A stretch of 64,000 nucleotides of DNA from Lepidodermella squamata (GCA_047495785.1 JBLDXI010000019.1:310001-374000); one strand, 5' to 3'. Positions 9,287 through 54,845 are shown, counted from the first letter of the stretch. A program made the numbers and translations. Notes: generated by a model from the letters alone, not told the origin.

Positions 9287-9457
9287 TAAAATAATTGTTT
9301 GTTAAAAAATTCCAGTTAAAAATTGGAAAATCGTGAGAAAATAAAAGAATTATCTTCGCTGCCGATCGTTTATTTTACAGGTTTTACTTTGCCTGGAATC
9401 GCGAAGATCGAAACAATGCCTATGTCAATCTCATTGCCAGCTTTGCATAAGTCAAGC

Positions 9458-33216: not shown

Positions 33217-33359
33217 ATGCATACAGCCTTAAATAGAAGCTCAAATGGAGAATCAAACATAACTGACCACCCGCCGATCTATTTTCAAGCAGTTCCACGT
33301 GTGCATAATTTTTCAACTGCTAATGGATTTAGGCCCGTTTATCCAAGGACGGTGGATAT
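33217..33359 (+). pseudogene. 5' part of a CD225/dispanin-like gene split by the 18.7-kb transposon
   Basis: MHTALNRSSNGESNITDHPPIYFQAV...YPRTVD(at|t)IAMQRY rejoins in frame with 52091-52655 once the element and one ATAT are removed. Confidence 0.9.
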
Positions 33360-33590
33360 CGTCGGCGCCGTGCAGTAATGTAGCTTAACCATGATATACG
33401 CACATTGGAAAATAAATTTTCTTATTTTGACGAATTTTGCCTCGAAACCGGTGTCATACTGACCGCCTTGATGCGATGAGCAAGAATATATATAATTCGA
33501 AGCACTTCGAGCGTTCAGTGCCACGTTAAAGCTGTTTGAGCGGTTTTTCAGTCGGCGTACTATTATTATTATTAGTGTGCGCATATGTAT
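33360..33590 (+). repeat. Left terminal inverted repeat
   Basis: Reverse complement of about 51855-52086; first mismatch at 33429. Confidence 0.95.
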
Positions 33591-34001
33591 GTTGTTGTGC
33601 ATGATGCGCTTATTAAAGCATGGGCGGGCAGGCGACATAACTTTTATGGAAATTCGTTGTTATTTTGCGTTGCATTGTGCGTAACAGGTAGCTCCGATAA
33701 CTACAAATTTATTGAGACTTGACGTAAAATACGAGAAGAATAATAAAATTCCCCTGAAAATGTTGTTCTCAAGTGCCTGCTATCTAAGATTTTCTTCACC
33801 GTTTATCATCGTTGACCAGAAGCCGCTCAAAGACACAACAACAACAACGCATTTAATGAATGCATGTTTTCATTAAAACACAACAAATAATTTATTTCAA
33901 TTTCTGCACAATAATAATAATAATAATATAATTGAAACCATTAAAACAAGAGGTAAAACTATATATTATATATAATACGAGGATAACACCAATACCAAAA
34001 T

Positions 34002-36615
34002 TCAAAGCCTGTCGACAAGCTCTTCTTCGTCTGCCATATCCACGTCATCGGCTGTCCATTCGTTGTCTTTATATTTTTCTCGAATCAGGGCTAGCCGATT
34101 TTCATATGCCCGGCGTTTCTCCTCTGAAGAAATGTCACATGGTAGAGCCTTGAAGTAATCAAGCATTCGCGGTGGAATAACACCATCCGCAATCCAAGAC
34201 AGCAAATCCATCTTTTTATCAAACGTGAGGTTTCGCGGCCCAGTGTACACTTTTTCAGGTTCAGCTGTCATGATAAAATAACAAATAAAATAACGAGCAG
34301 AGAAGGCAAGTTATTATTATCTACCTACCGTTATCATAACCAAATGGACCTTTATTCTTCACAGGAGTGAGGTGTACATCAAAACGTATCTTTTCGTCCT
34401 CATCCTTGTCTGTCAGCATTCGCTGGTCTGGAGTTAGCGGGCCTGTGCCATCTGTAGCTATATCGACATAGCTTTTTCTGGCCCACAGTTCATGCTCTCC
34501 GATTTTAATCTTGAACCGATAAAATTGATATTCGGTAATGCGAAATTTGCTGCTGTTTTGTAGAGTTGTCCAATAATTGGGCTTTCGGCGAAAATCAGAG
34601 AAGAAACTCCAGTCAAGTTCCACGACTTGAAATTTCTCCTTTTCATTTCCTTGTCGAGCACTTTTGATAATTTCGCGCCACTCAGCAGGGTCGGTAACGG
34701 AGCCAAATCTTCTCTGGGACTTTTCTATGCAGCTATGCATTGCGTCGACTGTCATTGTAGTGTGTCCTGAAACGCCATAAATAGTTCAAAATTGTCGGTA
34801 GTTTCCCATCGACTAAAAACATACCAGGAACTAGAAAGAGCCAATCAACAAAGCGTAGCCTTTCCTTGCCTTGTTGAACACGCTCGAAGTTGACTTTTCT
34901 GAGCGTATGATAAATTGCGTTGGGAATGAAGCTAAACAATAAAAATCTGATTAATGATACAAAAAAATCTTCATCAATAATTAAACTAACCGATTCTTTC
35001 CAGCTCCAACTGTCGAATCGGAGACAATTGTCAATTCCACAATATCGTCAGCGAGATGCTTCTTAATATAATCGTGCAGAATAGACCCAATTTCAGCGGC
35101 ACCCAGAGATCCTGAAAAGATAAAAGTTGGCCAGTTTCAAGACAAAAAGAATTATTTTTTCCAACAAATTTCTACCATTAAATTCTTCAAACAAGTAATT
35201 GAATGTGGTCCGCTCAGTGAGGTCAAAAATCGTAAAATTGGTTGTTATCAGCTTCCGCTTGTAGGGAAAAGCGCAGCAAGGAGTGCGCAATTTTGACTGA
35301 GCATCAACCTTGAATGAAACGATGTTCATAAATCAAGAATTGTCAAATTAAAGCATCACCTCAATTATTGCGCTTTTCCGTCCAGCAAAACCTGGCTGCC
35401 TTGATGCTTCCGCTCTTTCACGCCGCAAACGCCGAAATTCTCGGCTTGCGTCCTTTTCATTGAGATGCTGCTGGTGCTTGGCACGATTACGATTTTTTTG
35501 CGCATCCGTCATGTTATTCCACCGTGCGCATACCTAAGAAAATGAAATATAAAATCGAGAAAGCAGAAATTTGTGCAAAATCTTTTCATTACTTTGCACT
35601 TGTCATTTCTGGGTTGTTGGAACGAGACAGATCTGTATATTATAATAATGCAAATGATGCTTTCAGAAAACGGCGGCAAGTTGCATATATTATGCACTCA
35701 CCTGAAATGGGTACGGAATAGCGTTCGGAATGACTCAAAATTGCATCGGCGAACGCCAAGCTGAGGTGCAGACCGTATGTTAGCCACCCAGTCGCTGTAG
35801 AGACTTCCAATTGTAATGCTTGTTGATACGTAAAATCTCTTTGAAATTTTTCTTCGATAATGGCTTAGTTTTCTGTATTATATTTATGAAAAAAATAACC
35901 AATCATTTACATTTTCATAATAGAACTTGCCAGAAACTTACGCTTTTAAGCGCGGTTTCACAAAATTGATAACAGAATTTCTCGTCAACTCGTTCAAGGT
36001 ATTTCTGCCCCCTTCTTTCTTCGCACGCCGAAAGTCCGGATAAACAGTCAACTGGTCGGGACTAAGCTTGTTCTCCAAAGTGTAAGACACAAAGCGATTC
36101 GTAACATCCAAGGCAGACTCGAAAAACCTGCGACAAACAGTAATCCGCTGAATTTTTGCCGCTTTCCCTCGGAATTTCTCCGTAGCATAAATTGCAGGTA
36201 GTGTGTAGGTAATTCTACTTCGAAACTTGACAAAATCCTTTGAGACAAATCTCCCAACAAACTGACGTTGGTCAAAGATGGACCCAGTCGACCTAAACTG
36301 TTGACTCAGTTCTGCTATTTTCACGTCCGTGTATTTTTCCCAACATCGCTTTTCTTTGCAGCAGTTCAACAGCCGCTTGCCCTCGCGTTTCCGAACGACA
36401 GATAACTTTCGTTTCTTTCGCAGCTCGCCAGTATCTCGGTCTTTAGCAACAATTTCCCTCCTCACGTATGATTCTCCAGAATTTCTCATTCGCTTCTCCT
36501 CATCGACCCAAGCTGTTTTTACTCGCCGAATCGGTTTCTTTAATTTATCATTGGGAAACACGGGGATTTCCAAATCAGCGACCTTAGTCGCAGCCGATGT
36601 TGATGGAAGGCTCAT
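34002..36615 (-). CDS. Sola1-type DDD transposase (multi-exon)
   Basis: Spliced motifs: VCRRFFESALDV; LSHYRRK..FYV...SLYSDW; SFQQPRNDKC; VDAQSKLRTP..YKRKL..NFTIFDL..NYLFEE; EIGSILHDY; TIVSDSTVGAGKNR; FLVPGHTTMTVDAMHSCIEK..PAEWREIIKSAR; KKMDLL..IP..YFKALP. All three candidate catalytic Asp residues are present. Confidence 0.85.
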
Positions 36616-36745
36616 AATAATCAGTTAAATCGCCAATATTTTAAGGTTTTTGCTACAGCATTTGAAATAACCAAGATGTATCATTAAATGAATCGAATGA
36701 TCAAGAAATATTATGCAGATATGAGCAGAATAATTTAAAAAAATT

Positions 36746-37096
36746 CTACAAGCTATCTTCAGGTAGCTCGATTGTGTCAATTATACGCCCGTCAAGTCGG
36801 TATATGTGCAGCCGTTCCAAACCTCGCCGACTTCGGCTAATTACATTTTGGAGCCAGCGTATCACCTTCTGGAACTTGAATCCCAGAATAGCGACACCAA
36901 CAATGGCGATGACCGATAGGACAACTGAAACTATAATCAAAACGTCAGTTTTCGGCGTATCGCTAGCGTGCGTGGTGGAAGTAGTAATGGAGGTGCCTGT
37001 CGTAGAAGTCGTGTCGCAGAATACACAACTGCTGGCACTTAATTCAAGGCGGCATTTTATTACAGCATCCTCGCTAAACGGGACACAATCGGCCAT
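36746..37096 (-). CDS. Small single-pass membrane protein (Cys motif, Thr stalk, TM, basic tail); cargo family member 1
   Basis: 116 aa; C-x10-CRL-x6-CxxC, Thr-rich stalk, ~23-aa TM, RSRR, YRL. Confidence 0.7.
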   Translation of the reverse strand: MADCVPFSEDAVIKCRLELSASSCVFCDTTSTTGTSITTSTTHASDTPKTDVLIIVSVVLSVIAIVGVAILGFKFQKVIRWLQNVISRSRRGLERLHIYRLDGRIIDTIELPEDSL

Positions 37097-37295
37097 AATA
37101 ATAATTTTTTAATTTCTAAAAGGAAACAGGCAGGAATTTTATCGATAGATCATTTAATACCGAATGAAATAATAAAATTAACATTATATACTGCGGCAAA
37201 TAACATGGCAAGTAATATGGCAAGATTATAATATTATGGCAATACTTTATTATATGGCAAGATACAAGATACAAAGTAATAAACTAAGAATAATA

Positions 37296-37634
37296 TTATG
37301 CCGTAACTTCGGCATTCCCCTCGGCATTCCCCTCGGCCTCTTCGTTAGAGGCGAACAAGCAAAGCGGAAGGCTTTGCTCAAGCCGAGAATAACGCCTTCG
37401 ACGGCGAATATATACGACAGAAATGATAACAACGATAACAATGATAACAATGATAATGATCCCCGCTGAGATCAGACCAATTTCCAGCTTAGACAATCCC
37501 GTCTCAGCTGGAGAAGGCGGCAAGGGGTTTGAGGTTGTAACCGAGCTCGTTGTTGATGGCGGACATATGTTGCAGTCGACATGCAACAATCGACATCGCT
37601 CATAGGCTTCAGCGGACGGTGGAATGCAAGTCAT
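37296..37634 (-). CDS. Small single-pass membrane protein; cargo family member 2
   Basis: 112 aa; C-x10-CRL..CxxC, Ser/Thr/Pro stalk, Ile/Val TM, RRRRRYSRL, LCLFASNE. Confidence 0.75.
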   Translation of the reverse strand: MTCIPPSAEAYERCRLLHVDCNICPPSTTSSVTTSNPLPPSPAETGLSKLEIGLISAGIIIIVIIVIVVIISVVYIRRRRRYSRLEQSLPLCLFASNEEAEGNAEGNAEVTA

Positions 37635-38557
37635 TTAATAAAAATTGAACACTAAAATTTAATAAATGCAATTATTTAACACAAATTTGATTCGATTCGA
37701 TAAATTTAAATATGCAAGCAATTTCAATTTTTCGTAAATCACGATCACTCAGTCCATTCGATTTTCTAGTCCCTCGCATTCTCCAAGTGCACACTTTTCG
37801 GCCCTTACATTTTTCTATAGAAGCTATTTTTCTATAAATTCTTAAGCTCCAAATTGAGCTGGGTTCCGTCCGCTATTTCAATCTTTGAGAAGTGTATGCG
37901 TATTCACGGCCGTTGTTCTCGCATGTTATAAATCAACTGCGCGAACTTATTCCATTTTCAAAAATGCGGAAACAATTCTACCATCAAAATTGCATACAAA
38001 AGCATATCCAGACCTGTGATGCTTGTCACATGGAATCGATTTTTCGTTTAGAGAATCGAAACCTTGGCAAACTCCTGGCAAGCTGAACTACTGAACTTCT
38101 CGTAGCCGGACGAAAAGGACGAAGCTGACGCGTAATATGCAGACGCGTTTTGGACGAAGCTACTGACTGGACTACTAAAAATTCCGAAGTCCGGCCGAAG
38201 TCAGGACTTGGAATAGTCTGGCCTGGTTCTCCACATGACAGTTGTCATGAAACGCGACAGTTGTCGAAGCAGTTGAGGAATTCAAGCGGGGCTTTATAAG
38301 CGCAAAGAAAAGACGTTTTCTCCACATCAGCCGCTAATGTTTTCGCGCATCACTGGCCCCGGTGAAGAAATCTGAAAATTGGGCACAAATCCTGTAGTAT
38401 ATCGGATTGCGGAAATGTCTCCGATTGGCCATGGAAATTCCGTTTATCTAACACATCGAGTACATCTGAGTTTCTGAATTCGATTATACCGACTAATTTT
38501 TTTTTCTTTTCCAACACAATGAGGAAGACTAAATCAGACTAATACTGATACAAAAAC

Positions 38558-38790
38558 CAAGCTCGCCTTTTACGGCATGTGTGACTATCAGTCAGACTTG
38601 AACAGGAACTCTCTTCTTGATTCGATGAAGCGTGGTGATTGAACCCAAGCTCGCATTTTACGCTCTCTGTGACTATCAATTTGACTAGAACAGGAACTCC
38701 CTTCTTGATTCGATGAAGCGCGGTGATTGCACCCAAGCTCGCATTTTACGCTCTGTGCGATTTTCAATTTGACTAGTAGAACAGGAACTC
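38558..38790. repeat. Tandem repeat, ~88-bp unit, about 2.7 copies
   Basis: CAAGCTCGC recurs at about 38558, 38646 and 38734 with conserved GAACAGGAACTC..TTCTTGATTCGATGAAGCG. Confidence 0.85.
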
Positions 38791-38899
38791 CCAGGAGTTG
38801 AACATGACTTGAACATGAACTTCGTGATTTCATGCTCATGATTTCGATAAAAACGAGAGAGAGAGAGAGATTTCATCTCTGTTGACTCAGGTAACCAAA

Positions 38900-39173
38900 G
38901 TTTACAATTGCAGGGGAAGTAGCAGTGGAAGTTGAAACGACAAAAACGACCAATAGATTTTTCGTCAGTTTTCGGCGTATCGGCAGCGGGTGTGGTGGGT
39001 GTTGTGGTAGAAACCAGGCTAGAAGTCAGGCTAGGCGAGGTTACTGCGCCGGACGTGGTGGAAACACCAGGCTCTGTGATGGGAGTCGCCCCATTGCAGA
39101 AATTATCACAGTTGTCTCACAATTCAAGGCGGCATTTTACCAGGTCGTCAAAACTAAATGACACGCAAGGCAT
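38900..39173 (-). pseudogene. Disrupted cargo family member 3 (paralog of 36746-37096)
   Basis: MPCVSFSFDDLVKCRLEL*DNCDNFC...TTPTTPAADTPKTD; in-frame TGA and loss of frame before the TM segment. Confidence 0.7.
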
Positions 39174-39390
39174 TTGAGAATGTAATACGAGATTGGATGT
39201 AATATCTAAAAAAACGAAAATAATTCAATTATTTATGGTTTAATAATATTTATAATAATATTTCAATAATATATATCATTTTTTGCACGAATTAAGGAAC
39301 AATCAATTCTTCGAAAAATTATTGTTAAGTTACAGGCAAGTAACAGGCAAGGCCATAAAAAACTAGGTAAAAACAAAGTCGATGTTTTGA

Positions 39391-39729
39391 TCAGGCTGTT
39401 ACAGCATTCTCATCGGCAGCGCCTTGTTCGTTCGACGCGAACAAGCACAATTGAATTGTAGATTGATGATGTTGATCGATAGGGGCATAACGACGCCTGC
39501 GCCGACAAATGACGATTACAGCCCCTGTCGCGGCCACGACTGCTAACAAAAGCACTACCCCCCCGCATATTAGACCAATCAACATCGGGGTTGAAAGGCC
39601 AGGCGGCACATTGTTGGCTGGCGACGTTGTCGGGTTAAAGGCGGGGCATAGACCCGAACAATCGAGATTGAATAAACGGCAACGTTCAATCTCCTCAATC
39701 GTTGCCTCCCGACAAGTCGTTGTGGCCAT
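39391..39729 (-). CDS. Small single-pass membrane protein; cargo family member 4
   Basis: MATTTCREATIEEIERCRLFNLDCSGLCP..., TM, CRRRRRYAPI, LCLFASNE..VTA; paralog of 37296-37634. Confidence 0.75.
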   Translation of the reverse strand: MATTTCREATIEEIERCRLFNLDCSGLCPAFNPTTSPANNVPPGLSTPMLIGLICGGVVLLLAVVAATGAVIVICRRRRRYAPIDQHHQSTIQLCLFASNEQGAADENAVTA

Positions 39730-40272
39730 AAATATTCTCAAAAAATTAATCGACTAAAGTTAGAATAAATTTAAATAGCTGAAATGCACATCACACTTTT
39801 TAACGGAGTTGTTTAACGGTTTAATTGTTGGTTAATGTGCGGAAAACGGAGAAATAAACAAAGAAGCAATAAGAAATATAAGAAAACTTTTATAAAAAAT
39901 ACTTTCTAGCTTATACAATATTATTTTATTGTGAGATGAGATCGGTATAATATTTATAATATACAGTGAAAGTTGTCTAAACCGGAAGTTTTTGAGTCCA
40001 AAAGTGTGGACTTCATTCTCAACCGGTCTGGTGGTATAAACCTGACGGAGTTTGGGAGTCTGGAATTCGCAACCCGAGCGACCCGAGCGGCCCGAGCGCG
40101 GCCCGAGCGCGACCCGAGTCCGATTTAGACGACTTGCACTGTAGTTGTTTTCGGTTTTATAGGTAACGCAAGAACATTGAGAAAGTCCAAAGATTGCATG
40201 CAAAAAATATTGCGGGACCTTCATCATAATGGCATTATAAATCATATTCATGTGAGATTATAATAATGTTCG

Positions 40273-41774
40273 TCATTGCACATCATTTGCCTGGGCGGAC
40301 GGCTGGGCTTCCTGTCTAACTACATATAAATTAACTCCGGTTAGAAATGCCATAAATTGACGAAGATGGGTTATCCTAGCAACTACGGTTGCCATATTAG
40401 CGGTAGCAAAATTGCGCAAGGCAGTTAGCTGTTCAGCGGTATATTGTATACTTTGATACTCAAATTCTGCTTCAGAAATATAAGGAAAAGCAATGAGTCT
40501 GGTAGGCGGCGTATCTATTCTGCCTTCTCCTGCAAGACCTACAGCTACCACGCTGGGAACTTGTTCAGTCTCTACAGCTGTAGGGGCTTTAGATTTGGGG
40601 CTAGCGCCAACTATCGCATCGTCAAGACCATTCCCAACTACGGCAACTCCAGGGCCAGTCTCCACGGATTTTTTTCCAGTTATTAGGGCTAGGCTCATAT
40701 AAATTGTATTCTTTAAGCTGGAATAAACTAAAAAGGTAAAACTTGGCACGAAAAATAACGCTGTATGTTGTGGCTTGAATGAGGTTCCGTAATATATTAA
40801 AAAAAAGCCCGTTATGATCAAAACAACGTTTATCGCCATTTTCGGCCTACTCGAGACCAAAGGACCGTTTATCCAAGAAATAACAAACGCAGAGCAAGAA
40901 CACAAAAATATTAAGGCGTATAAAATATTATGTGCATTATCAATCGTATAATTTAGGTATTCAAAAGAGGCATATGATCCAGCGATAAATGACAGCAACA
41001 CATAGGCAACAGGCCTTTTAGTATTGTACAATTGTGATATAAAATAAAACGCAGCAGCTATCCCCGCTAAACTTCCGCTCATCGAACAAAAACTATAATA
41101 AGCTAGATTCGTTTCAGTTAGCCATTTCGATGCTACAACCATTAGAACACCTGTTAGCGTGACAATGAAATTATTAAAATCAAAATAACTTTCAGCCAAT
41201 TGCAGATCGACAGTCGAATTCAAGGGGCATATAGCAATGCTGTAGTAATCAAAGGCCGACACAAGCGCCGTCTCGAAGGCATCTTTATCGTCCTCGTCTG
41301 ATGCATCAAATAAGCTTGGTAGAAATAGTGACATAATCTGAAGAATGCCGGGCGAACGACGGTTTGCAGTTACTGCACAGCATCTAGCAGCGAGCTTTTC
41401 AGAGCAATCGTTGCCAGTATAAATCTCCAATTTAGCCACATCTTGTATTGATGCTGGTATTATTCGGTACTGGCATAAAGTTTTTCATTAAATATCCAAA
41501 AGGCAAACCAAAACCTTACCTTGTTTATCCAAAATAAATAATTAAGTTGCCATAATTCCGACTTAGTTAAGCACACTTGAGAAGGGATCGGCGGCGAATA
41601 GTCTGAAAAGGAAATCTGGTATGCCCCATCCTCAACGAGGGCCCACGGCGGAACACTAATTTCTTCGAAATTTTCGCAGTTGTTGGTTGTTAAACAGAAT
41701 GCCTCAGATAGAATTGCTGAGCTCCAAATTATCGTTAGAACATTAAACTCTGCGTGAAATTTGCGGTATGCCAT
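40273..41774 (-). CDS. NEMP/TMEM194-like nuclear envelope integral membrane protein
   Basis: Signal-like N-terminus (MAYRKF..), one intron (about 41517-41470), about 5 TMs with NEMP-type motifs: YYSFCSMSGSLAG..FYFISQL, GPLVSSR..INVVL..GFFLIYYG, and ISEAEFEYQSIQYTAEQLTALRNF..VVARITHLRQFMAFLTG (compare NEMP1 LTEEEY..QGEVETRKALEELREF..VSRIQSPKRFADFVEG). Confidence 0.75.
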
Positions 41775-42147
41775 ACGATAAATAAAACTGACTAAAATGT
41801 GAGAGAAATTTAGAAAATTAAACATTTATTTCTTAGTTGTGGGTAGCTATAATTATCAAATAATAGATCACACTTGTATTTTATTATAATTGACAGTGAA
41901 TTTACATTCTTAGAAGGCGTGCAAAAAGGAAAAATGAAGATGATAACCACAAAATAATAATTAATTGGCTAGATTCGCGCACAAGAGTTAAAGGACTACT
42001 AATAAAACGCAATATTTTGCAATATCAAATATCAATATCAATTATCAATAAAAAGCCAGAGGCGGAGATTTCCTTAGGTTACCTACAACATGCTAGAGTT
42101 CCTTGCTAAAGAGTTCCTTGTTGCTGGTTAAAGTAGCAAGATCTATA

Positions 42148-43821
42148 CTATCGAAATGGCCGAAAGCGATTGATCAAAGGCTGAATAATACTTGAACGAC
42201 TTTCTTCGCTCTTAGATGACGATTCATTGTTGCCCACGTCACGTTTTTCTTCGGCAATGACACGACTGCTTTCGCTATGGACGATTCTTCTTCCAGATCG
42301 CAAGACAGACGAAGATGGATCGGAGGCTAGTCTGCTACTTGTTTCAGTAGTTTTCAAATTAACTATGGGCTCAATTTTATTAGTAGCAATAACCTCACGG
42401 TCTGAATCGTTTGTCACACCACCACCACCACCATCTTCTCTATTCATGTATTTCTCAATCATGCGCGCAACAGCCAAAAAAGATAAGATGTAAATGAGAG
42501 ATAAATACCACATCAGAGGTCGGTTAAGATATAGCTCGCTCACATATAAATAACGCAGCGATAGAGCGACAAATTGGGTTACTATGACCGTGTCATAAAT
42601 CTTTATCTCGGTTGCATAGCTTGTTACAACTAATTCCAAGGCACCGCAGACCGCCAGTAGCATTAGTTGCATTAGTAGCCTGTTTCGCATAGAATCTGAT
42701 CCCGAGTAGTAATATTGGTATAATAGATACAAAGCTACCACGATGTAGAAATAGCACTGATAGGCTGAAAAATTCGGACTTCTGATGATAAAAATTGAAA
42801 TCTAAGACAATTAAAGTCAAAATTATGATCATCGTTTGCCAGAAACGTACCTGAGCTAAAACTTCCCGGACCAGGGTGGATTTTTTCGCAAAATATTCAA
42901 GCGTGGATTGAATAGGGGTATAAGCCAGAGAAATGGCCCTGACTAAACTTGGTATCCAGTTTGTGAACATTTCTCTCACCGGAACGGAAACACTGAGATC
43001 CCATAGCGTTTGAGTAAGCCACACCTTCGAATAGCTACGCAGCATGCAGCTTGTGTCCTCAGCGAAGTCGATAAAGTAAGCTATGGATATCTGAGAATAA
43101 ATCAAATGAGCAAACTGCTCTGGAAAAATGCTTATTACATACCAATCCAGGGAGTAAGTTTCCAGTATTCTTCTCGTCAAAGGCCTTTTAATAGAAATTC
43201 ATCAAATTGAAAGATTAAGCAATTAAATAACCTTCATACAAGCCAAAATATCAGCTCCCTCTTTGCAGGCAGTTTCATAAGAGGGATTGATACATACAAG
43301 AATCCGGAAAGTGTAGGATTTCTAACAATAAAATTCACTTGAGTTAACTCATGTTCACAGAATAATTTGCTCACCAAATCATCTGCAGTGAGAGGAAATG
43401 TTTTTTTGACAACCTCCTTCATATCTTTGATGATCTGAGTCATGAAAACGAACCCAATGATGTTTAAGTCAGGTTAAAGGGCTCACCTTATCTCCACAGT
43501 CTCGTTTATCTTTGCCCGTTTTTACAGCCATAAGTTTTCCAAGATAGTAATGCCCCTCTTTAGAGAAAAACATGTTTTTTAGCGATCAATGTTCGAAAAT
43601 GAATCCAAATACTTACCCCAAATGTAAGCTACTGTCTCACACTCGGTATTTACTGGCCCGGTAAAAAACCCATCCGTCACATTTTCCCAGTCGATATCTG
43701 GCGCATCAGCAAGAGGGTTCTCCAAAACAGGAGATAGTTTCACCGTGCGTTTTTCAATTTTTCCATTGACATGAGCATAGATGGCGATAATTGTTATCAG
43801 ATAATATGTCGTAGCATTCAT
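42148..43821 (-). CDS. Brambleberry/GEX1/Kar5-like nuclear membrane fusion protein (multi-exon, shortened)
   Basis: Signal peptide. Splicing out ~50-bp introns (e.g. 43374-43322, 43231-43185, 43142-43091) gives KRDCGDKIIKDMKE..LTADDLKSYTFRILVCINPSYETACKEGADILACMKAFD..ISIAYFIDFAEDTSCMLRS (Cys-rich domain), then TMs YFYIVVALYLL..RNRLLMQLMLLAVCGALE and a Ser/Arg-rich tail. Confidence 0.6.
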
Positions 43822-44034
43822 TTTGCAACAAGGAGTCGAAAAAATGAACGCAAGACGAAGCGCGCCAAAAGTGGATGATTGACAAAGGAAGCTTTTGTTC
43901 TGTCAAGGCCCTTATTAGAGAATAAAAATCTGGTAAAATGTAATTTTACATTCATAACTTGAAAGATTTTGATATTCATTTTGAAAGAGAAATTATAAAC
44001 TTCAAGATTAAAAAGCTTCTAAAAATGAATTGAT

Positions 44035-44300
44035 CCCTCGACAAGCTCACCATCTCAGCTTTCGATTTCGTGCTGCTAGCAAGTGGAATGACTTACCGCC
44101 ATCGATAAGATCTTCCGAAAACCCGAAGATCCTCAGAGATGAACTCCTGAAAGTATTACTGAAAGCAGAATACGTGGACGATTTCGTCTACACAAAGAAG
44201 AGGTAACTCGCCACCTTACCTCGACGCGCCCATCTGCGTCCGTTGGATGGAAGACCGCCTTAGTGCGAATCCAACGTACATACATACATACATACATACA
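44035..44300 (+). mobile_element. 3' end of a CR1/L2-like LINE with (TACA)n tail
   Basis: SFRFRAASKWNDLPPSIRSS ORF2 C-terminal motif, 3' UTR and TACA repeats; second copy at 49402. Confidence 0.75.
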
Positions 44301-44302
44301 TG

Positions 44303-44530
44303 ATGGGTCGAAGTTCAACTACTGCGACGCCGTCATCGATCAAGGTTGCAAGACCCAGCTGGATCGTCTTCAACACGCGCAAAACGAAGCCGTTCGTGCC
44401 GTTCTCGACGTCAGTCCTGATGAAGTTCTCCTGCGATTGCGATGGGTGAATGTGCCAGGCAAACGACTGGTCCACCCGGCTAAAACCATGTGGACGTGCA
44501 GCAGGGATCCTGAGACCCCGAGGCACGAGG
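44303..44530 (+). mobile_element. LINE ORF2 C-terminal fragment
   Basis: FNYCDAVIDQG..LDRLQHAQNEAVR..LRW..GKRLVH, homologous to LNYCDTVLDQA..VQNRVMR..LGW..GKRKVH in the 58-kb LINE. Confidence 0.75.
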
Positions 44531-44899
44531 CACCCTCGTCGCTAGTCAAGCCGATGATAATACACTTTATTTTCTTATAGTTCTGGAAGTATAGTAGTGT
44601 CTTATAGTTCCGGCGTTAAATAATACTCTATTTTTGGCTCCGTGGAATTACCTCATGTAAATATTCTCTACTTTTGTAAATCATTCTCCAAATAAGTCTT
44701 CTGGTAGCTTTCTTGCTACGACGGCGTTTGTAGGCTTCGCTGAGTGAGTGGAAAAGCCACTGATTATAGGCTGTTGTGGCGCCCTCCAACTTTCCTGATT
44801 TTGTTGCTGATTTTTTTGCTAATGCTTTTTGCGCACGGCTTCTTTGCGCCTGTCACATCTTCTTAGTTTCTAGGGATGATTAATACTACTTAAATCGAA

Positions 44900-45705
44900 A
44901 TGCATGTAATCCAAGTAAAATTTGCTGCTGGTGCTTCAATTCTAGCTGCTAAGAAGTATATACAAGATAATTATCCAGAACTTCAATTCACCTATTCCAG
45001 AAAACTTGGTGAGAATCAGGACATGTGATATATCCGATTAATTATAATAAGTCTTTTTCAGGTTCTGGAAGACGTTCTTTTTATTTTCGCTGTAGGGGGT
45101 ATGGGAGGTTCTTAGCCGAAACAACGAGTGAGAAGTGTCGATCTACGGCCTTATTGACGATTTATGATAACGGAGAAATGATATTCCAACGCTCTGCTAA
45201 TAGCCATCCAACTCATCCATTACCATACCAAATCTCTCGAATGTCAGTTGGCAGTAAGGCGTTTATAGAAGAAAACTTCAGGCTAAAAACAGCTTCGAAA
45301 ATACACGAAGAGTTGTCAGCCATGAATGAAAACAACCCGTTCTTAACGACTCCAAGCCTTGATCGGATTCAGGATTTCATAAGGCAGCTGCTACATCGAG
45401 ACCTAGGCTCCTTCAATAGGCGCCGTCCAGCGTCATCAAACGTTCTTCAAAATTTCACCAAACGGTCATGTCGGCATTTTCCTGTATCTATCTCAAAAAA
45501 GTTGAAATATCAATGGCCTTGCGGAGCCTGTCTCTCAGATCTTAGCCACCCTAATTCGCGAAAAGAACAATTGTCTATTGAGTGCTCTTGTTGCCATATG
45601 TATTTTCACAAAACTTGTTCATTGCTGACCAATCGCGAGTTCTCGCAATTTCAGTCAATCGTAAAGCTGAAGTGGTTTTGCTGTTATTGTAACCCGAAAA
45701 CTTGA
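44900..45705 (+). CDS. WRKY/GCM1-type (MULE/FAR1-like) Zn finger plus C-terminal PHD finger protein
   Basis: Two exons. FYFRC..KC..NSHPTHP; PHD C4HC3 pattern CGAC..IECSCCHMYFHKTC..KWFCCYC. Confidence 0.7.
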
Positions 45706-46578
45706 TTATTTTTTTGCTCTACCTAAACGTTAGATTTATGCGCTGTTCCAGAGCATTCATTATTATAATATTTTAGAACAATAATTACAGTGTTGAAATT
45801 ATATAGTTATGTTATGTTAAAATTATAGTGTTGATGAAGTGTTGAGGAGAAAGTTATGAATAAATTCACTGTTTGCAGCTAGAAAGGTTCATTTTCTTGT
45901 TCGATAATGATGGGATGACTCAGACGGCTCCGTGGGAGAACTTATTTTTCGATTTGAATTTGATGTTCGCATTGCCAAAATGAATAGAACGATCAGTGCC
46001 AATATTTGAAAGATGGCACACTTTAGTGAACCGATCGACAGCTCATGTTAAGAACTTGACTTGAACAATCGCGCGGGTCATTTTCATGAGGAAAATTTGA
46101 CTTTCCCGCGCATATTATATGGCATGTTATTGCGGCATATATGGTACATCCTGTGGCAGCAAAGTCGCCGATTCTCGAATGAAAAACAATGAAAAGATCA
46201 ATTATCAAATTACCAAATCGTACTATTTATTGACTAAATATTATTCATATTCCAAATATTTGACTAAATATTCAATTTGAGCAATTTGATGTAAGGTATG
46301 AGCCAAAACAGTGTCAAGCAATAACAGGAGTAGTAAGAGTACTCTAACAACAACTAACTCGTAACTCGTAACAGCAAGAGTTTTGATTCGAAGCAGTAAC
46401 AAAAATACGAGCAAGAGTCAAAAAGATGAAAAAATATCAAATTAGGGCAGGCACGACGAAAAAGGCACGAAGGAAAAGGCAGTCACGAAGACGAAGGAAG
46501 AAGATGAAAAAGTTGTATAACAGGCGTAAGAGTTATAATCGTTGCGAAACAACTAGGCGACATATTATGATATTATTC

Positions 46579-46732
46579 ATTTGTGACGTGGCAAGCGATT
46601 TCGGCCCTATCTCTATCTTCACAGGCATTTGAAAAGGCAACAGCTGACGCATAATCATTATTGCGCAACACCCAATTTTCAAATGACTGCGAAGATAGAG
46701 ATAGGGCCGAAATCGCTTGCCACGTCTCATTT
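46579..46732. repeat. ~55-bp-arm inverted repeat (small MITE/hairpin)
   Basis: GACGTGGCAAGCGATTTCGGCCCTATCTCTATCTTC versus GAAGATAGAGATAGGGCCGAAATCGCTTGCCACGTC. Confidence 0.85.
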
Positions 46733-47134
46733 GAGCAGTTATATTTTGTAGTATTTATTTATCCGCATCACGGTAAGTAAGAGTCGAAACCGGTCAAAAA
46801 CAATAGTTTTTCAGGCGCGAGTATCAAATGATCAAGAGTTAAAACCATCGAAAAATAAGAAATAATAAGCAAACGCAGCGTTTTTTAACGCTGAAGAATG
46901 CGAAGAATGCTGAAGATTTATTAACGCAGCGAGTAAGAAGAAAAATAAGAAATAAGAAGAAGATGATCGTTCAAAAAATCGAAAATCTACAATCAAAAAT
47001 AAGATCGAGGAGCAAATCAATTTTTGAAACTGAGCAGCATGCTCAACTTTATGAATGTCGCAGCAATTTAATTGACAAATCTAATGGTTCTATGACTGAA
47101 GAGCACGCGATCTGAGAGCAAAGATCAAACCAAT

Positions 47135-49003
47135 CTAATTGCCCTCTGCGCAAGGTGGTTTAACTGTCACAGTGTTTTGACAGTTAAACCACCTTACGCA
47201 GAAGCACGCCGGGCTACAACGCCGGTTATTTTTGCGGCAGCCGCACTGGGCTAAACAGCCGGTTTTGCAGTAGCAACGAACGGCTGTAGCGTCCTGCATG
47301 TTTTTCTGGTCGGTCGGAGCAGTCGAACCAGCCGGAGCAGTCGAACCAGCCGGAGCAGTCGAACCAGCCGGAGCATGATCAGACTCTGAACCTGATAAGT
47401 CGGGTCGACATTCCGGTAAAGATGAAGTTGAAGATGATGAAGATGAAGATGGTGGCAGCGCAGCATTAGTAGGGTCTATAAAACCAATTCAGACTTTAAA
47501 ACAAAATTAACAAGCATAACAAATCGTTGATACCGTTGTTTCCAGTGAGCGAGCGAGCCGTTGGGGTAGAGAACAAATTTGTATCGACCGAAACCTCCTC
47601 TCCTGTAAAAATATATAAATTATAAAAACAGGGTGTAAAATATTGTTAACTAACCAGGCGTTAGATGGAAATTGGGCGGATGTAACTGAGCATGTAACTG
47701 AGCCAGCCGCTGCTGCTCAGCGGTAATCGCATTTTCGATGGCATGTAGAAGGCCCATCGCCTCGGCAACTTGCGCCTCTGCAGCAGCGACCCGTGCTTCG
47801 GCAGCCGCAGCTCGCGCATTGGCAACCTCCGCACGGGCCTCTGCCGCGCGAGCGTAATGTACAGCTTCATGCGTAGCCGCCTCTTGGCGGGCACGCTGTT
47901 CTTCCGCCATGTGAAAGAGCCGCATGGCATTAGCGGCGCGGAGTTCAGCGGCATTCGCATCGGCATCGCAGACCCGAGCATGCTTCACGGGGACACGAGG
48001 AGTTGGCCCAATCTCAGAAGATCCTAGGTAAAACAATGTTAGCCAAATGAAATGTGTGATAATCAAATCAAAACCTGGCACTTGAGGATGATCAGGCTCC
48101 TTAAATTCGCAAGATTCTGCAAAAACGAATAATCATGATAATTACGATTTCGGGTTTCAGCTTTTACCAATGTTTTCATCCGGTGAGCTGGCACCAGCAA
48201 CAGATTGCCCAGCATCTTTTAAGTCTTTCAGGTGAGCGAACGCACGCCGAAACGGCGTTGCTACACTATCAAGCAACGGCGAAACCGCGCCGCGAATCGT
48301 TTCTAGAGTTGAAAAAAATATTACAAGAATCTAGCAACTAAAACAAACAAACCAATGTCAACGCTAACAAAGGCGCGCTCTCGGAGGCAGCCTGAAGTAG
48401 AAAGCATGAATAAAAAAAAATAAGCAAATTAATTACAGCTTACCGACGATTCGAGCACGTAGAGCTCTGGTTTTTGTAAATATGTACAGGCAACAGCAGC
48501 AAATTACGATAGCGCCGGTTACGCTGGTGACGGCGATTATCGCTATGTAGAAATACTGATGCTCCTGAAAATACAAATAAACTCCAAATAAATACAATAC
48601 AAATAATGTAAAATCATATGTCCTACGAGGACTTTTTGCAAATGGGTGTAAAAATCGGTCACGCAGAAATTAAATTCGCTAAACAAGAAATTCATGGCTT
48701 TACAGTATTATGTAACAGATGAATGGAAAAGGCTCAATTGAAGGAAACAGTATCAAAAGTTGTTTAATGCATGATCAAGAGCATTCGAAATGGTAACAAA
48801 AATAAAAAAATGTAAATGAAACCTACAAGCGTTGTGCTGTTGGAGTTGTGCTGTTCCCTGCTGATGACCACACCGCTGATGGTCAAATCGTCTGATTGCC
48901 GCTGATGGCCGCTGATGGCCACACCGTCGTTGACCACGCCATCGTTGGCGAGAGCACGCGATCCAACGGCCGGCGGCAAAACACCACGGAAAAATTCAGC
49001 CAT
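47135..49003 (-). CDS. Multi-exon transmembrane + coiled-coil + Tesmin/TSO1-like CXC domain protein
   Basis: A chain of mostly phase-1 GT-AG introns links the TM (YFYIAIIAVTSVTGAIVICCCCLYIF), an Ala/Glu coiled coil, a Ser run, (AGSTAP)x3 and a C-terminal CYCKTGCLAQCGCRKNNRRCSPACFC..NCQN. The start may instead be the ATG at about 48695. Confidence 0.75.
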
Positions 49004-49401
49004 TACAACAAAAGTACAAAAGTACAAAAGTACAAAAGTACAAAAATCAAATGAAAAACCTATGCAATAAAAGCCATATTGTTGGAAAAATAACTTATTT
49101 TAACCAATAGAAAATTTCAGATTATTCAGATTTCAGACTACAAAGACTTTTCCACGCAAGTATGCTTCGCAAGATCAAGTTGATGAAAGTGAAAGAAGGC
49201 AAGCTTGCTAGCACGTTTTTTTTTGCTCGGCGATCGGTCGTGCTAGGCTGGCCGTCGGCGTGCTAGGCTGTGCTTTTTTCATTATTCAATTAATTTTAGC
49301 ATTATAATATAACGTAATTAAAAAATTCTTGTTTATTTTATTTCATTTGAAAACCAAGAACGTCTTTTGGCGGGTTATTTTCAAGTTTTAGGAGTTTCGC
49401 T

Positions 49402-49571
49402 AACTCCTGAAAGTACTGCTGAAAGCAGAATACGTGGACGATTTCGTCTACACAAAGAAGAGGTAACTCGCCACCTTACCTCGACGCGCCCATCTGCGTC
49501 CGTTGGATGGAAGACCGCCTTAGTGCGAATCCAACGCTAATATACATACATACATACATACATACATACAT
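49402..49571 (+). mobile_element. Second, shorter copy of the (TACA)n-tailed LINE 3' end
   Basis: Near-identical to 44142-44300. Confidence 0.85.
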
Positions 49572-49914
49572 TTCAACAAAAAAGTCTCAGTTGACGTCGT
49601 CGAACGAAACAAAATAATAAAGAAGTCTCTCTCATTGCATTCATGCGTGGGAAATTTCATTTTCATTTTCGCCGAAGATTTGCCTCGAAATCGTTTTAAA
49701 GCTTTTATTTTGATTTAATTTGCAAGATCTGTTGTGAGACTTCGGCTTGTTCTTCACTACTTGTAGCAACTAGTAACTTGTGAACTATAACTAAATTTTC
49801 CATCTCCATCGCTTAACTTACTCGGAGAGGTTTGTCTTTAACCTCTAGATCCTGTAAAATGACCAAAAAATGACTAACCCATCAATGCATCCAAGTTCAT
49901 CCGTATGTTTAGGA

Positions 49915-50230
49915 CTGATAACAAGTTGATGCATCTGTTTTCTACTCGTAACAAGTTGACCTATTTGTTTTCTACTCGTAACAAATACTTATACTTTAAA
50001 CCATTAGTGTCCACTCGCGCGCAATGTTGAATCCTTTGAAAAGTTGTCATCACGAAGGCCCGGGAGGCTCTCTTACTGTCGAGACCAAGTCATCTTACAC
50101 TGGGCTTCTTGGAGCATCCTGTCAAGTGTTAAACTGCGACTCCAATATTTGTTTTCTACTCGTAACAAATAGGCACATCTGTTTTCTACTCGTAACAAAC
50201 TGGCCCGATTGTTTTCTACTTGTGACAAGT
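49915..50230 (+). repeat. Dispersed short direct repeats GTTTTCTACTCGTAACAA
   Basis: Five recognisable copies at about 49937, 49967, 50150, 50181 and 50211. Confidence 0.7.
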
Positions 50231-50498
50231 GGAGTTTTCAGCAAATTTCGCACAAACTTGACATCAATCAAACAACTTCCATCAAAGCCCCGCTAGTGGT
50301 TTAGGGCTGACTTCGTGATTTGGGTAACAGACAGTCAGTTGCCAGTTTTTACTGTTCAAATGAGCATCATTGCTTTGACCGTTCTCATAATTTACGTAGG
50401 ATTTCAGCTGCTAACGTTTGCTGAGTTTCTCTGTTGCCTGTTTACTGCTGAATTTAGTATGATACAAATAATTTTCTATTGAATAGTAAAGTTTAACG

Positions 50499-51094
50499 AT
50501 GATTAATCTTACTAATAGTTGGATTTTGGCGGTTTTTATGTTGGAGACGATATCGGGATCACCGCCTTGTCTTGAGCCCACTGGCAAGTTTTTTTGCCAG
50601 TTTTTGCTAGAAAAATCTTACAGCAATGATTTTACAGATGCCAATATCATATGGTGCGCCAAGTCTGGCAGTTGCAGAGTATGTCGCAGTCTCATTGAAT
50701 CGACAACAATAACAACAACAACATCAACAACTTCCACAACAGCAACAGACAAAACAAAGACCCCGCCAACAAACGCACAGACCCTGTCAGTGTCCTATCT
50801 AACGAACAGCGTGCTGAACATTTCGAAAGACTGCTCACAGATTTTACCGGTTTGTTCTGAATGTACCTGAGTTTAATCACGAAGTTTAACCATTTTTCTC
50901 TGTCCCACCAGGATAATAATATTACCGACGCTTATTCGGTCATTCTTTGGGTTCTATTTGCTCTTGTCATCTTAGCGATTTGCATCTGGCTACTCCGATG
51001 CCGCTCAAGTAAGTTAAAGTTAACGCGTTTGATTTTCAAATTGTGATTGTTTTTATTCCAACATCAAGGGTCTGGCTATATGGCAACTGACTAA
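50499..51094 (+). CDS. Type I membrane protein with Cys motif and Thr-rich stalk (cargo)
   Basis: Signal peptide MINLTNSWILAVFMLETISG, C..CAKSGSCRVC, poly-Thr, a spliced TM exon YSVILWVLFALVILAICIWLL and a short tail. Confidence 0.6.
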
Positions 51095-51854
51095 AATGTT
51101 GATTGCGGCTGGATTAATAGCCAGTGGTTGCAAATAGCTAGCAAAAAACCTATCGAAATGAGCGATGACATCAACAATCAATCAATCAATCTTCATTTTC
51201 GTAAAAAAAACCTATTTATCCACTATCTTTTTGTAATTTTGTAGTGTCTCTTTTTACGCGAAATTTCTAGTCCGAAAGTGTCTCTTTTGCATTTGCATAT
51301 TATTATTATTGTAATAAATAATTATTTGTAAGAAAAGAATCGTTTTAAACCCTGAGTTTTGTTTTATTATCGCTGAATGATAATTTTATTTTATGCAAAA
51401 ATCTTGCTATTGACACCTTTCTGAAAACGATGCAATTTTGCGACTTTGATTCTCCCTCGGCTCATAGCTGCGCATTAAAATGATGTGTTGAGTTCATTCG
51501 GCGTTGCTGCAACAGCTAGGTTCGCTTCACAACAAACTCTCCGAGGGCTAGTACATGGCAATAACTTTTAGTTATGAATTGATTGATGGGAGAAGGCGAG
51601 GTGTATAAAAGTAATGTCGTTTTTATTGCACATCGGTTGCACTTGTCAAACGGTTGTTGAGATTACGAAACATTTATTTTTATCAGCAGAAGTTATTTAT
51701 GGGCGGATTTCAGAAAAAAACTAAGACATAAATATTTTTGAGATACCCTTTGAGATACCGAACCTTAACCCCAAGCCTAAAAGATATCAAAGCATTAATA
51801 AGAAAAAAGAACAACGGCGGGAAAAGATGCTACATGCGGCCATCATATATGCAT

Positions 51855-52086
51855 ATGCATTTGCACACACACTAATAATAATAACAGTACGCGGACGAAA
51901 AACCGCTCAAACGGCTTTAACGTGGCACTGGACGCTCGAAATGCCACAAATTTGACATATTCTTGCTCATCGCATCAATGCGGTCAGTATGACACCGGTT
52001 TCCAGGCAAAATTCGTTAAAATAAGAAAATTTATTTTCCAATGTGCGTATATCATGGTTAAGCTACATTACTGCACGGCGCCGACG
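51855..52086 (-). repeat. Right terminal inverted repeat
   Basis: Ends ...CTGCACGGCGCCGACG followed by ATAT. Confidence 0.95.
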
Positions 52087-52090
52087 ATAT

Positions 52091-52655
52091 TGCTATGCAA
52101 CGTTACCCCACAGCGGCGAGAATGAGTGGTGCATTTGTTGAGCCTAGGCCTGCCCATCCGACTTACTATCAAGCAGTTCCTCGTGTGCATAATATTTCCA
52201 CGGCTAGTGGCTTCGGGCCCGTTTATCCAAGGAGGGACGAAAATGCTATGCAAAGTTACCCTCCAGCGACGGGAATGAGGGGTGCGTCCTATGCCGAGCC
52301 TAAGCCTGCCCAACCGCAGGCTATTATCATCATGGCTCCACGAGTTTCATTCGATGAATCTACCAATCGTCTCAGGAAAGCAGCATGTTGGATGGCAATC
52401 ATTTCGCTGTTCCTGGGATGTTTGCCGCTGTCGATTCCTGCTTTTATATGCTATAGCAGGAAGAACAGAAGTCTTGAAGCTACTAGCAGAAAAGCAAGGG
52501 ATACCTACAAATGCTCGATAGTGACATCATCGATATCAATTGTCCTGGGCATTTCTATCACTGCAATTATTGTATGGCTGAGAGTAGTGGTCTACTCATC
52601 TTCATCGTCGCCTGGTACCAATCCTACTTATTACAATTCAGCTTCATTTGGCTGA
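52091..52655 (+). pseudogene. 3' part of the interrupted CD225/dispanin-like gene (still an open frame from ATG 52095)
   Basis: RLRKAACWMAIISLFLGCLPLSIPAFICY...YKCSIVTSSISIVLG; contains a second copy of the ~52-aa N-terminal repeat. Confidence 0.85.
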
Positions 52656-54266
52656 TAACAATCTGATGAATAGTCGAATCAGTTCAATTAATAGACTCGT
52701 GCGCCTGTTGACAGTTTCAGAAGCTCAGATACAAAATGTCAATAAATAACCCATTATTCATTGCTAATCTTGTTTGAAGTTGGAAGAAACCAAGTACGGC
52801 GAGTATAAAGTATGATTAATTGTGTGGGCAAGATAAATCAGATATGTGACGGGAAAACTCCCCGTTGTCGTGGGACGCCTTCCGCGTTCTCCCGTCATCC
52901 GTCCGTACGTACGTCAATGAGGATAAGACTGCGTTTTAAATAGAGGAGTCAGAGTCACAGTCAGATGCCGCCGGATAATTTAATGTATTAAGCTCACAGG
53001 TAAACAAATGGTTGTCTAACGCGTAAAGAATTGTCTTGAAAGATACTGAAACGAGTGGATAACACCGGTTCGCTGCAAATTAACGCAACGACAAACGAAT
53101 ACCTATACTATACTCCCACGCTTTTGGATAATTCTTTAATCAGCTGTGGGCGGGTCAGTTAAAATTTACTGTCATGTAATTCAATATACTCACCCGCGTA
53201 TTCAATTAAATTCGGCATAAGCATAGAGAACAGATTGATCACTCCTTTCTCTAGTGAAATGAATCATCTTGCTAAAGCAATAAATCATACTCACCGGCTT
53301 ACTTTGATTTCTTCAAACTTCTAACGAAAATTTCATTTATGAATAATCGGCGAGATTGAATCTTTGCGACCCTCAGCGATCACTGCTCGTCTGAAGACTA
53401 AATCAGCAGTCTAAACTATCAGTCATGAGTTGACCGGGCAAACATGCTCAGTCAACTCATGACATTCAAAACAGACTGACGTTCATTTGGTGCCTGAATC
53501 TCAATCTTATTGTGTTTTTCTCGTTTTGCAACAGTCGGCTGTAGGCCTGAAATCTGAACCAAGTCACCGAAGTTGTCAGAATCAACTAATTAAAGCCACA
53601 GTTACAAAAATGGCATATATTTATGCTTGATTCAACTTATTTTTGCCTGAATAATTTGACTCTTTTACATTTTACACAGTTAGGGGCCATGAATGAGAGC
53701 CCTTTCGATGCGAAATGGCCATATTTGCGGTGATCAATACTGTCCAGCCACTGAACTAACCTTCAGTTCTGGAAGTTTTCCATGCGATGGGGCACATTGT
53801 TGGTGTGCGGCAAATTTCGCCACTTATAGGCCCCTCGCCCCTCTGAACAGGCAACAGGGAAAACTAACATGCGAAAAGTTAGTTTTGCCATCTTGCCATC
53901 TTCCTACTGCCGACTGTCGGCGCAAGATGACGTTTTGGCAAGATGACTTATGCCGAGTTTATTTGAACACGCGAGTGAGCATAGTGCCTTACATGCCTGG
54001 AAATTTATACCGAACCCGTCACCCGCCCACAGCTATCATCTAAAAAGAAAGCTATTATCTAAAAGCGTTACGAAATGTCATGAAACATAATAAAACCAAA
54101 ACACGAATGAATAACACCAGTCGCTGTGAAATTATCACGCAAAATTGCTATAATGTGCCCACACGAATTTTTTGAAAATTGACAGCAAAACACGAGTTTT
54201 AAAATTTTTATCAACAGAGGTACTGGATCCAATAATCTAGAATTTGCTTTCCAAACATCCGTTAAA

Positions 54267-54845
54267 ATGTTTACAGTCCTAAATGAGAACTCAGATAAAG
54301 GATCAGATACATCTGATCACCCGCTGTCCTTCAACCAAGTAGTTACGCATAGTGAAGAAGGCGCTGGGTCTGCAAATACAACTGTTCCCCCGCCGTCATC
54401 CCATGCTGACGTCGCTGGTTTTGCCGATCCAAGGAAGGAAAATATTGGTATGCAAAGCTACGTGCCAGCGCCTAGAATGAACGGTGCAGCTGCACAAGTT
54501 GTGACCTCTCAACCGCAGGCAATCGTCATCATGGCTCGACGAGTTTCATCAACCGATAAATTAACCATTTGCCTAAAGAAAACTGCATATTTCATGGTAT
54601 GCATTTCGCTGTTCATTGGATGTTTGTTAATATCGGTTCCCGCCTGGGCATGCTATCGTCAAGCGAGTCGAAGTGCGCAAGCTAAGAGCAGTATGTCACG
54701 GGGTAGCTACATATGCTCGATAGTGACGTCAGTGATATCAATAGCCGTAAATATAATTATCATATGGGCAAATGTGGCATTCTCTTCACCTGACACAAAA
54801 CCTAATACTACCCGTATCAGTTTTTGGGTATCAGTATCAGGATGA
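54267..54845 (+). CDS. CD225/dispanin-like membrane protein with a MITE-altered C-terminus
   Basis: LKKTAYFMVCISLFIGCLLISVPAWACY...YICSIVTSVISIAV; paralog of the 52095 and 26675 genes. Confidence 0.75.
   Translation: MFTVLNENSDKGSDTSDHPLSFNQVVTHSEEGAGSANTTVPPPSSHADVAGFADPRKENIGMQSYVPAPRMNGAAAQVVTSQPQAIVIMARRVSSTDKLTICLKKTAYFMVCISLFIGCLLISVPAWACYRQASRSAQAKSSMSRGSYICSIVTSVISIAVNIIIIWANVAFSSPDTKPNTTRISFWVSVSG

Follow-up and report, generated by a model that had tools for sequence, protein, structure and literature searches.

We analyzed a 64,000-nt stretch of DNA from Lepidodermella squamata (GCA_047495785.1 JBLDXI010000019.1:310001-374000), hereafter the window, in which positions are counted from the first nucleotide; from its sequence, the window was read as eukaryotic and most likely animal. 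It contains an insertion of ~18.7 kb (~33356-52090) that is bounded by inverted repeats and that carries, among others, four neighboring genes: a NEMP-like gene, a gene described as 'Bmb/GEX1-like', a gene for a protein in which a transmembrane (TM) segment is combined with a CXC-type cysteine cluster (the TM-CXC gene), and a gene for a protein with a PHD finger. The original prediction was that these four genes form a nuclear-envelope module on a transposon. Our analysis somewhat favors the reading that the region lies within one large DNA transposon (~18.7 kb) with terminal inverted repeats (TIRs) and host-like passenger genes, one of which belongs to the NEMP family; the evidence for a module is much less favorable. 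The features that we located are collected in Table 1.

Table 1. Features located in the window, with the evidence or remarks on which each entry is based (TIR, terminal inverted repeat; TM, transmembrane; LINE, long interspersed nuclear element; ORF, open reading frame; RT, reverse transcriptase; UTR, untranslated region).
Feature	Coordinates	Strand	Basis
Left TIR	33356-33580	+	repeat scan and alignment; the initial ATAT may be a target-site duplication
Right TIR	51866-52090	-	repeat scan and alignment; the final ATAT may be a target-site duplication
Interrupted host gene (small PY-motif protein with two TM segments), 5' portion	33218-33355	+	ATG at 33218
Interrupted host gene, 3' portion	52091-52655	+	rejoined frame and collinearity
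NEMP-family gene, 500 aa, two exons (41825-41520 and 41469-40273)	40273-41825	-	Pfam PF10225
Orphan gene ('Bmb/GEX1-like'), seven exons, 438 aa; predicted signal peptide, six-cysteine lumenal domain, several TM segments	42148-43821	-	splice model and hydropathy
Single-exon gene with C-terminal Pygopus-type PHD finger	45025-45705	+	PDB match and C4HC3 pattern
TM-CXC gene, 7-8 exons, 417 aa	47049-49003	-	splice models and hydropathy
Candidate transposase gene	34002-36615	-	nine-exon GT-AG model, intact 694-aa frame
Four small Cys/Thr-rich single-pass membrane-protein genes	36749-39753	-	reading frames; mutually paralogous
Fifth small Cys/Thr-rich single-pass membrane-protein gene	50490-51043	+	reading frame
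Nested LINE debris: ORF2 C-terminal end, 3' UTR, (TACA)n tail; also an older, second fragment of an RT tail	43990-44900	+	translations and alignment
Second LINE 3' end, 5'-truncated, with (TACA)n tail	49395-49570	+	repeat scan and alignment
Tandem gene family (small proteins with two TM segments, PPxY-type motifs, and internal repeats)	3173-30319 and 52062-54842	+	CD225 matches, sub-threshold (Pfam)
Single-exon RCC1-BTB gene	16921-18351	+	best matches only ~30% identical
Intact LINE ORF2, 919 aa	58084-60843	-	RVT_1 match, E=1.8e-35 (Pfam)

The insertion and the host gene that it interrupts

The two arms of the inverted repeat were placed by the repeat scan alone at 33356-33549 and 51897-52090; alignment of the two ends extends the arms to ~225 nt, with sharp outer ends. 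The outermost 73 nt are identical in the two arms; overall, the arms agree at 204 of 220 positions and differ at ~7%. The termini begin (AT)CGTCGGCGCC, and the terminal 29-mer is present in the window at the two element ends only (0 occurrences are expected by chance). The lack of inner copies of the terminus in the window implies that the element was not built from two small elements, so a composite of this type was ruled out.

The gene that is split by the insertion belongs to the tandem family that encodes small PY-motif proteins with two TM segments. When the flanks are rejoined with one ATAT, an intact host frame of 231 aa is obtained; the rejoined DNA aligns with the host gene's own next repeat unit ungapped over the junction (124/153 identity), and the alignment score is 89 with one ATAT as compared with 82 when either none or two are retained. 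The insertion is precise and has a net duplication of 4 nt; the palindromic nature of ATAT leaves the length of the target-site duplication ambiguous (0, 2, or 4 nt). That the four genes sit on a transposon is therefore borne out in the form of a TIR-bounded insertion, with sharp inverted ends and an empty site that can be restored.

The same arrangement could be obtained without mobility if a block of host genes came to lie between inverted 225-nt repeats by rearrangement (e.g., an inverted duplication and an insertion) or by an assembly join; the NEMP-like gene might then be the species' own orthologue. Such an origin would fit the similarity of gene structure and base composition inside and outside the element (the GC content is ~0.40 along the entire window, and the genes in the window have short GT-AG introns of ~50 nt), the failure to find a recognizable transposase, and the single copy that was seen of the element; also, the low Pfam score of the NEMP-like protein could reflect the divergence of a poorly sampled host lineage. 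However, rearrangement and misassembly do not readily explain junctions that are exact to the base, with the interrupted frame restored and 4 nt duplicated, and arms that end sharply, with no difference in the outer 73 nt but divergence further inward, are the signature of functional transposon termini. We consider an immobile block of this type unlikely.

The four genes at 40273-49003

All four genes are located where they were predicted to be, and all have intact, canonically spliced frames. The first, at 40273-41825, is confirmed by profile search as a divergent member of the NEMP family, as predicted. Its product matches Pfam PF10225 in two stretches (E=1.5e-13, 51.4 bits; the gathering cut-off is 28.7), and its hydropathy profile contains a signal-like segment (residues 26-47) and five TM peaks (at 198, 228, 256, 284, and 313). 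An above-threshold profile match, a signal-like N-terminus, and five TM segments are all shared with the NEMP family (NEMP1/TMEM194A); in addition, the C-terminal tail contains, by eye, an acidic stretch of the type 'EAEFEYQ...LR.F...F..F..G' where NEMPs have their conserved nucleoplasmic domain. Unlike a typical NEMP, the protein has a match of only 51 bits that covers mainly positions 2-162 of the 249 in the profile, and its gene is found in a TIR-bounded insertion rather than in a recognizable conserved host context. A word-indexed search of 5.8 billion proteins with the NEMP exon identified no homologue at E<=1e-3, and searches of metagenome contigs and viral contigs identified no relative. 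NEMP1/TMEM194A is an inner-nuclear-membrane protein, and NEMP is needed for the integrity of the nuclear envelope in the germline.

The neighboring gene, at 42148-43821, had been assigned to the Brambleberry/GEX1 family of nuclear-membrane fusion factors. In the members of this family, a signal peptide is followed by a cysteine-rich domain in which six cysteines are invariant, then by one or two coiled coils, and finally by two or three TM segments (PMC4291462, PMC7586128). The best splice model for the gene (GT-AG introns of 47-94 nt with strong splice signals and compatible phases, and an intact frame) predicts a protein with the gross features of this layout. The hydrophobic N-terminus, ending ...AHVNG, was called a signal peptide by inspection; six predicted lumenal cysteines (residues 61, 89, 122, 131, 140, and 171) are located in a domain of 110 aa that is spread over four short exons; and the C-terminal region contains hydrophobic stretches between residues 229 and 336, two of them strong (263-281 and 318-336) and two weaker, and has an acidic/Ser-rich tail. 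Thus, the signal peptide, the lumenal six-cysteine domain (in the best splice model), the C-terminal TM segments, and the acidic/Ser-rich tail are shared with Kar5, GEX1, and Brambleberry; what differs is the spacing of the cysteines, the lack of coiled-coil character, and the lack of any detected sequence or profile similarity.

The spacing of the six cysteines is kept from fungi to plants. The cysteines are found at residues 56, 68, 91, 105, 116, and 141 in yeast Kar5 (gaps of 12/23/14/11/25; PMC4291462) and at residues 79, 91, 111, 124, 133, and 155 in Arabidopsis GEX1 (gaps of 12/20/13/9/22; PMC7586128 supplement), so the family gaps are 12 / 20-23 / 13-14 / 9-11 / 22-25; the gaps in the protein encoded by the element are 28/33/9/9/31 and do not fit. 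When the protein is aligned with the domain of Medicago GEX1 (Smith-Waterman), the score of 27 is that of shuffled sequences (mean of 26.5), 42% of which reach it. Between the last cysteine and the first TM segment, a distance of only ~65 residues, a crude composition test identified no window rich in helix formers of the type expected for a coiled coil. The protein is also shorter, at 438 aa, than known members of the Kar5/GEX1/Brambleberry family. Searches of Pfam, including Tht1 (PF04163), gave no match at E<=10 with the exon pieces, that is, with pieces and not with the whole spliced protein, and a phmmer search of 1.84 billion proteins with the 201-aa frame at 43198-42596 returned only a low-complexity repeat artefact.

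The automatic splice model of the gene retains just four of the lumenal cysteines. Alternative splice paths that would restore the Kar5/GEX1 spacing need weak sites, tiny exons, or cysteines from the C-terminal hydrophobic region, so these were discounted. We also compared the protein with the NEMP-like protein and found no paralogy. As far as can be judged from exon pieces, profile searches fail to support the GEX1 assignment, and to that extent this half of the original prediction is refuted by its own standard; with the misfit in cysteine spacing, the missing coiled coil, and an alignment score at the level of shuffles, the Brambleberry/GEX1 claim is left with the gross layout, and from its sequence the product is decidedly unlikely to be a true member of the Bmb/GEX1/Kar5 family.

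The TM-CXC protein starts with ~60 residues ahead of its single TM segment, which is followed by basic residues; next come an Ala-rich helical region (residues ~177-272), a Ser/Thr/Pro linker, and a C-terminal cysteine cluster, CxC-x3-C-x3-CxC-x6-C-x3-CxC. A GTAAGG donor is located directly after the cluster; if it is used, the following exon supplies x2-C, for nine cysteines in all. With the 3' end spliced in this way, the top Pfam match is TCR (PF03638), with E=0.63 and a score of 10.8 bits (cut-off, 23.5) over positions 3-35 of the 38-position profile; the whole exon and the unspliced variant have no Pfam match, and the PDB search returned nothing relevant. The nine-cysteine CxC arrangement, with TCR as the best Pfam match, is shared with the tesmin/TSO1 CXC (CRC) domain and with other Zn3Cys9 clusters (MSL2, EZH2). 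Unlike the CRC proteins, however, the TM-CXC protein has a match below threshold and a single cluster rather than a tandem pair; two of its spacers are one residue shorter than in the CRC consensus, and we know of no CRC protein in which a TM anchor is joined to the CXC cluster. The prediction of a membrane-anchored protein with a DNA-binding CXC domain is upheld in its architecture (one TM segment, a helical region, and a cysteine cluster); the CXC domain itself is identified at the level of a pattern, with a sub-threshold TCR match.

A perfect hairpin of 25 bp (47140-47205, - strand) lies over the last cysteine codons of the CXC cluster and the GTAAGG donor; its folding free energy (dG) is -50.2 kcal/mol (z=-8), and none of 200 shuffles folds as well (0/200). 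The hairpin may have arisen as a small palindromic insertion, or it may function in regulation or splice control. Between the PHD and TM-CXC genes (46577-46734) we also observed a 59-nt inverted repeat, 92% complementary with a 40-nt loop, that resembles a miniature inverted-repeat transposable element (MITE) or a hairpin.

The single-exon gene at 45025-45705 encodes, by inspection, the full C4HC3 set of zinc ligands at the C-terminal end of its product. This finger aligns end to end with the PHD structures of Pygopus in the PDB (E=1.3e-3); however, the match to the Pfam PHD family (PF00628) is below threshold (E=1.7). It also differs from the Pygopus-type finger in that it is joined to an N-terminal part in which a possible FLYWCH/WRKY-like pattern, C...C...H..H, can be seen by eye; the combination of such a finger with a PHD finger is more typical of transposon-derived proteins. 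The AlphaFold model of the reading frame has a pLDDT of 35 and is unusable. A PHD reader had been predicted, and the ligand pattern and the Pygopus match lend this some support that the Pfam search does not.

To what extent the frames could have stayed open without selection was estimated by simulation of neutral decay at 3% substitutions per site, with the NEMP-like, 'Bmb-like', PHD, and candidate transposase frames (the TM-CXC gene was left out). All four frames were open together in ~5e-4 of the trials, so the genes seem to be maintained; this suggests purifying selection on the genes of the element, on the assumptions that the arms were once identical and that the splice models are correct.

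The four genes were brought together in the original prediction by a shared theme, that is, that the NEMP-like, 'Bmb-like', TM-CXC, and PHD proteins wrap the excised DNA of the element in membrane or tether it to the nuclear membrane, or manipulate the fusion of pronuclei or karyomeres, for entry into the germline or for drive. A genuine NEMP-family gene is indeed present, its 'Bmb-like' neighbor has the gross layout of Kar5, the order of TM segment, helical region, and cysteine cluster in the TM-CXC protein is that expected of a membrane-to-chromatin tether, a PHD finger is encoded nearby, and the modeled frames are all intact despite the divergence of the arms. A module, however, requires a second nuclear-envelope gene beside NEMP, and only NEMP is supported: the 'Bmb-like' protein misfits both Kar5 (PMC4291462) and plant GEX1 (PMC7586128 supplement) in its cysteine spacing, lacks a coiled coil, aligns at shuffle level, and has neither a Tht1 match on any piece nor a phmmer match among 1.84 billion proteins. 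The CXC and PHD calls are both sub-threshold in Pfam, and neither domain is specific to the nuclear envelope; unrelated TM genes of a mucin-like kind make up half of the passengers; and no related elements were found in which the co-occurrence of the genes could be followed. A module with these functions is, in our judgment, highly improbable.

The candidate transposase, the other passengers, and the remainder of the window

The gene nearest the left end of the element is a candidate for the transposase. Its nine-exon model was obtained only with relaxed splice thresholds, and no match was returned by Pfam or, with pieces of the gene as queries, by the PDB, a protein database (5.8-billion-protein index), and metagenome contigs. 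With respect to element class, the size and the TIRs would fit a Maverick/Polinton; we rejected this assignment because the polymerase, integrase, protease, and capsid were not matched among the reading frames scanned.

The other passengers are five small Cys/Thr-rich genes, four in one cluster on the - strand and one near the right end on the + strand. In the cluster, the products of the second and fourth genes (muc2 and muc4) are 40% identical, and that of the first (muc1) resembles that of the third (muc3). The only Pfam matches of the small Cys/Thr-rich genes are non-specific (TM and mucin-type), and no known family was identified; also, no paralogues of the element genes are found elsewhere in the window. 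An 88-nt tandem repeat (38557-38792) is located amid the clustered genes, and two clusters of a 30-nt repeat with the core TGTTTTCTACTCGTAACAA (49876-50228; five occurrences as compared with 0.03 expected) lie just upstream of the + strand gene.

Small membrane proteins that group into paralogous sets account for most of the passengers, and the passenger frames are intact; the membrane proteins might serve a different selfish or adaptive function (e.g., as a toxin-antidote pair or as surface proteins), and the NEMP paralogue would then have been captured incidentally. Large cargo-bearing elements with toxin-antidote or surface-type functions are known in nematodes and fungi. However, the searches gave no homology to known families of toxins, antidotes, or surface proteins, and we regard this explanation as very improbable.

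The element has itself been the target of retrotransposition. The LINE 3' ends at 44110-44300 and 49395-49570 belong to the same family and are 99% identical, and the first runs upstream into the C-terminal tail of ORF2; such near-identical ends inside the element point to recent retrotransposition into it. The nested young LINE fragments show that, in its later history, the segment has been no different from ordinary chromatin.

Outside the insertion, the window contains the RCC1-BTB gene, an acyltransferase_3 gene (Pfam), an intact LINE ORF2, and the remaining members of the tandem two-TM family; Rfam and tRNA scans of the window gave no match. The best matches of the RCC1-BTB protein among 5.8 billion proteins are from fish and a crinoid, at ~30% identity; judging from this distance, public data would seem to contain very little from the source lineage, and the negative homology searches are to be weighed accordingly. 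Direct repeats of ~459 nt (5134-5592 and 8295-8744; 94-97% identical, with a spacing of ~3.15 kb) flank a weak RT-like fragment (6844-8255), an arrangement that may represent a retroelement that is either long terminal repeat (LTR)-like or tandemly arranged. Two nested pairs of inverted repeats (57 and 81 nt, 94-95% complementary) at 9442-9812 are MITE-like.

A cargo-carrying element and its possible significance

In the transposon reading that we somewhat favor, the element would have entered a coding exon of a gene for a small membrane protein, with TA/ATAT as the target site, bringing with it one candidate transposase gene near its left end and ~ten passenger genes. Movement would occur by cut-and-paste through the perfectly conserved 73-nt termini, and the passengers would be carried along without being needed for transposition. 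The NEMP paralogue would be expected to reside in the nuclear envelope or the endoplasmic reticulum; the other passengers would be lineage-specific membrane proteins, a PHD-finger protein, and a membrane-anchored protein with a CXC-like zinc cluster. The short introns (~50 nt) of the passengers match those of the host genes, so the passengers were most likely acquired as host genomic DNA or have long been resident in the lineage.

Several observations weigh against this reading. The transposase label of the gene at 34002-36615 is presumptive, taken from a position adjoining the TIR and from putative transposase motifs. A single copy of the element was seen within the window, and searches of protein, metagenome, and viral collections identified no relatives of its genes, so mobility as a family is putative. 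The target-site duplication can be read as ATAT, as TA, or as 0 nt with AT...AT termini; the splice models are computational predictions; and if the two arms differed from the start, as they may have, the dating and the argument for selection are both weaker.

As a transposon, the element is comparable to the DNA transposons that are known to carry cargo (Pack-MULE/transduplicating elements, ToxhAT, the Starships of fungi, and nematode Mavericks with cargo): it is likewise a TIR-bounded unit with host-like genes, and here, as there, these genes have no evident role in transposition. It differs from those systems in that it comes from an animal, is 18.7 kb long, and has ~ten complete multi-exon genes, and in that no tyrosine recombinase, protein-primed polymerase, integrase, or capsid was matched (Pfam) among the reading frames scanned.

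The broadest form of the functional proposal is that the element encodes a set of proteins for contact with the nuclear envelope and chromatin (a diverged NEMP, a Kar5-like lumenal cysteine protein that has diverged past recognition, a CXC DNA binder anchored in the membrane, and a PHD reader) by which it would enter or persist in germline or zygotic nuclei or bias nuclear fusion; to us, the odds are heavily against it. With one confirmed nuclear-envelope gene and a single copy of the element, the co-option of nuclear-envelope biology is a lead and not a finding. The case is of moderate interest, mainly as an animal DNA transposon that carries cargo and holds a diverged NEMP paralogue. If it is mobile as a unit, it would be an animal transposon of the cut-and-paste type that moves ~ten complete multi-exon genes; cargo on that scale is documented mainly for the Starships of fungi and the virus-like Mavericks. 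A NEMP paralogue that is borne by a transposon would, in turn, give a handle on mobile elements that co-opt the biology of the nuclear envelope.

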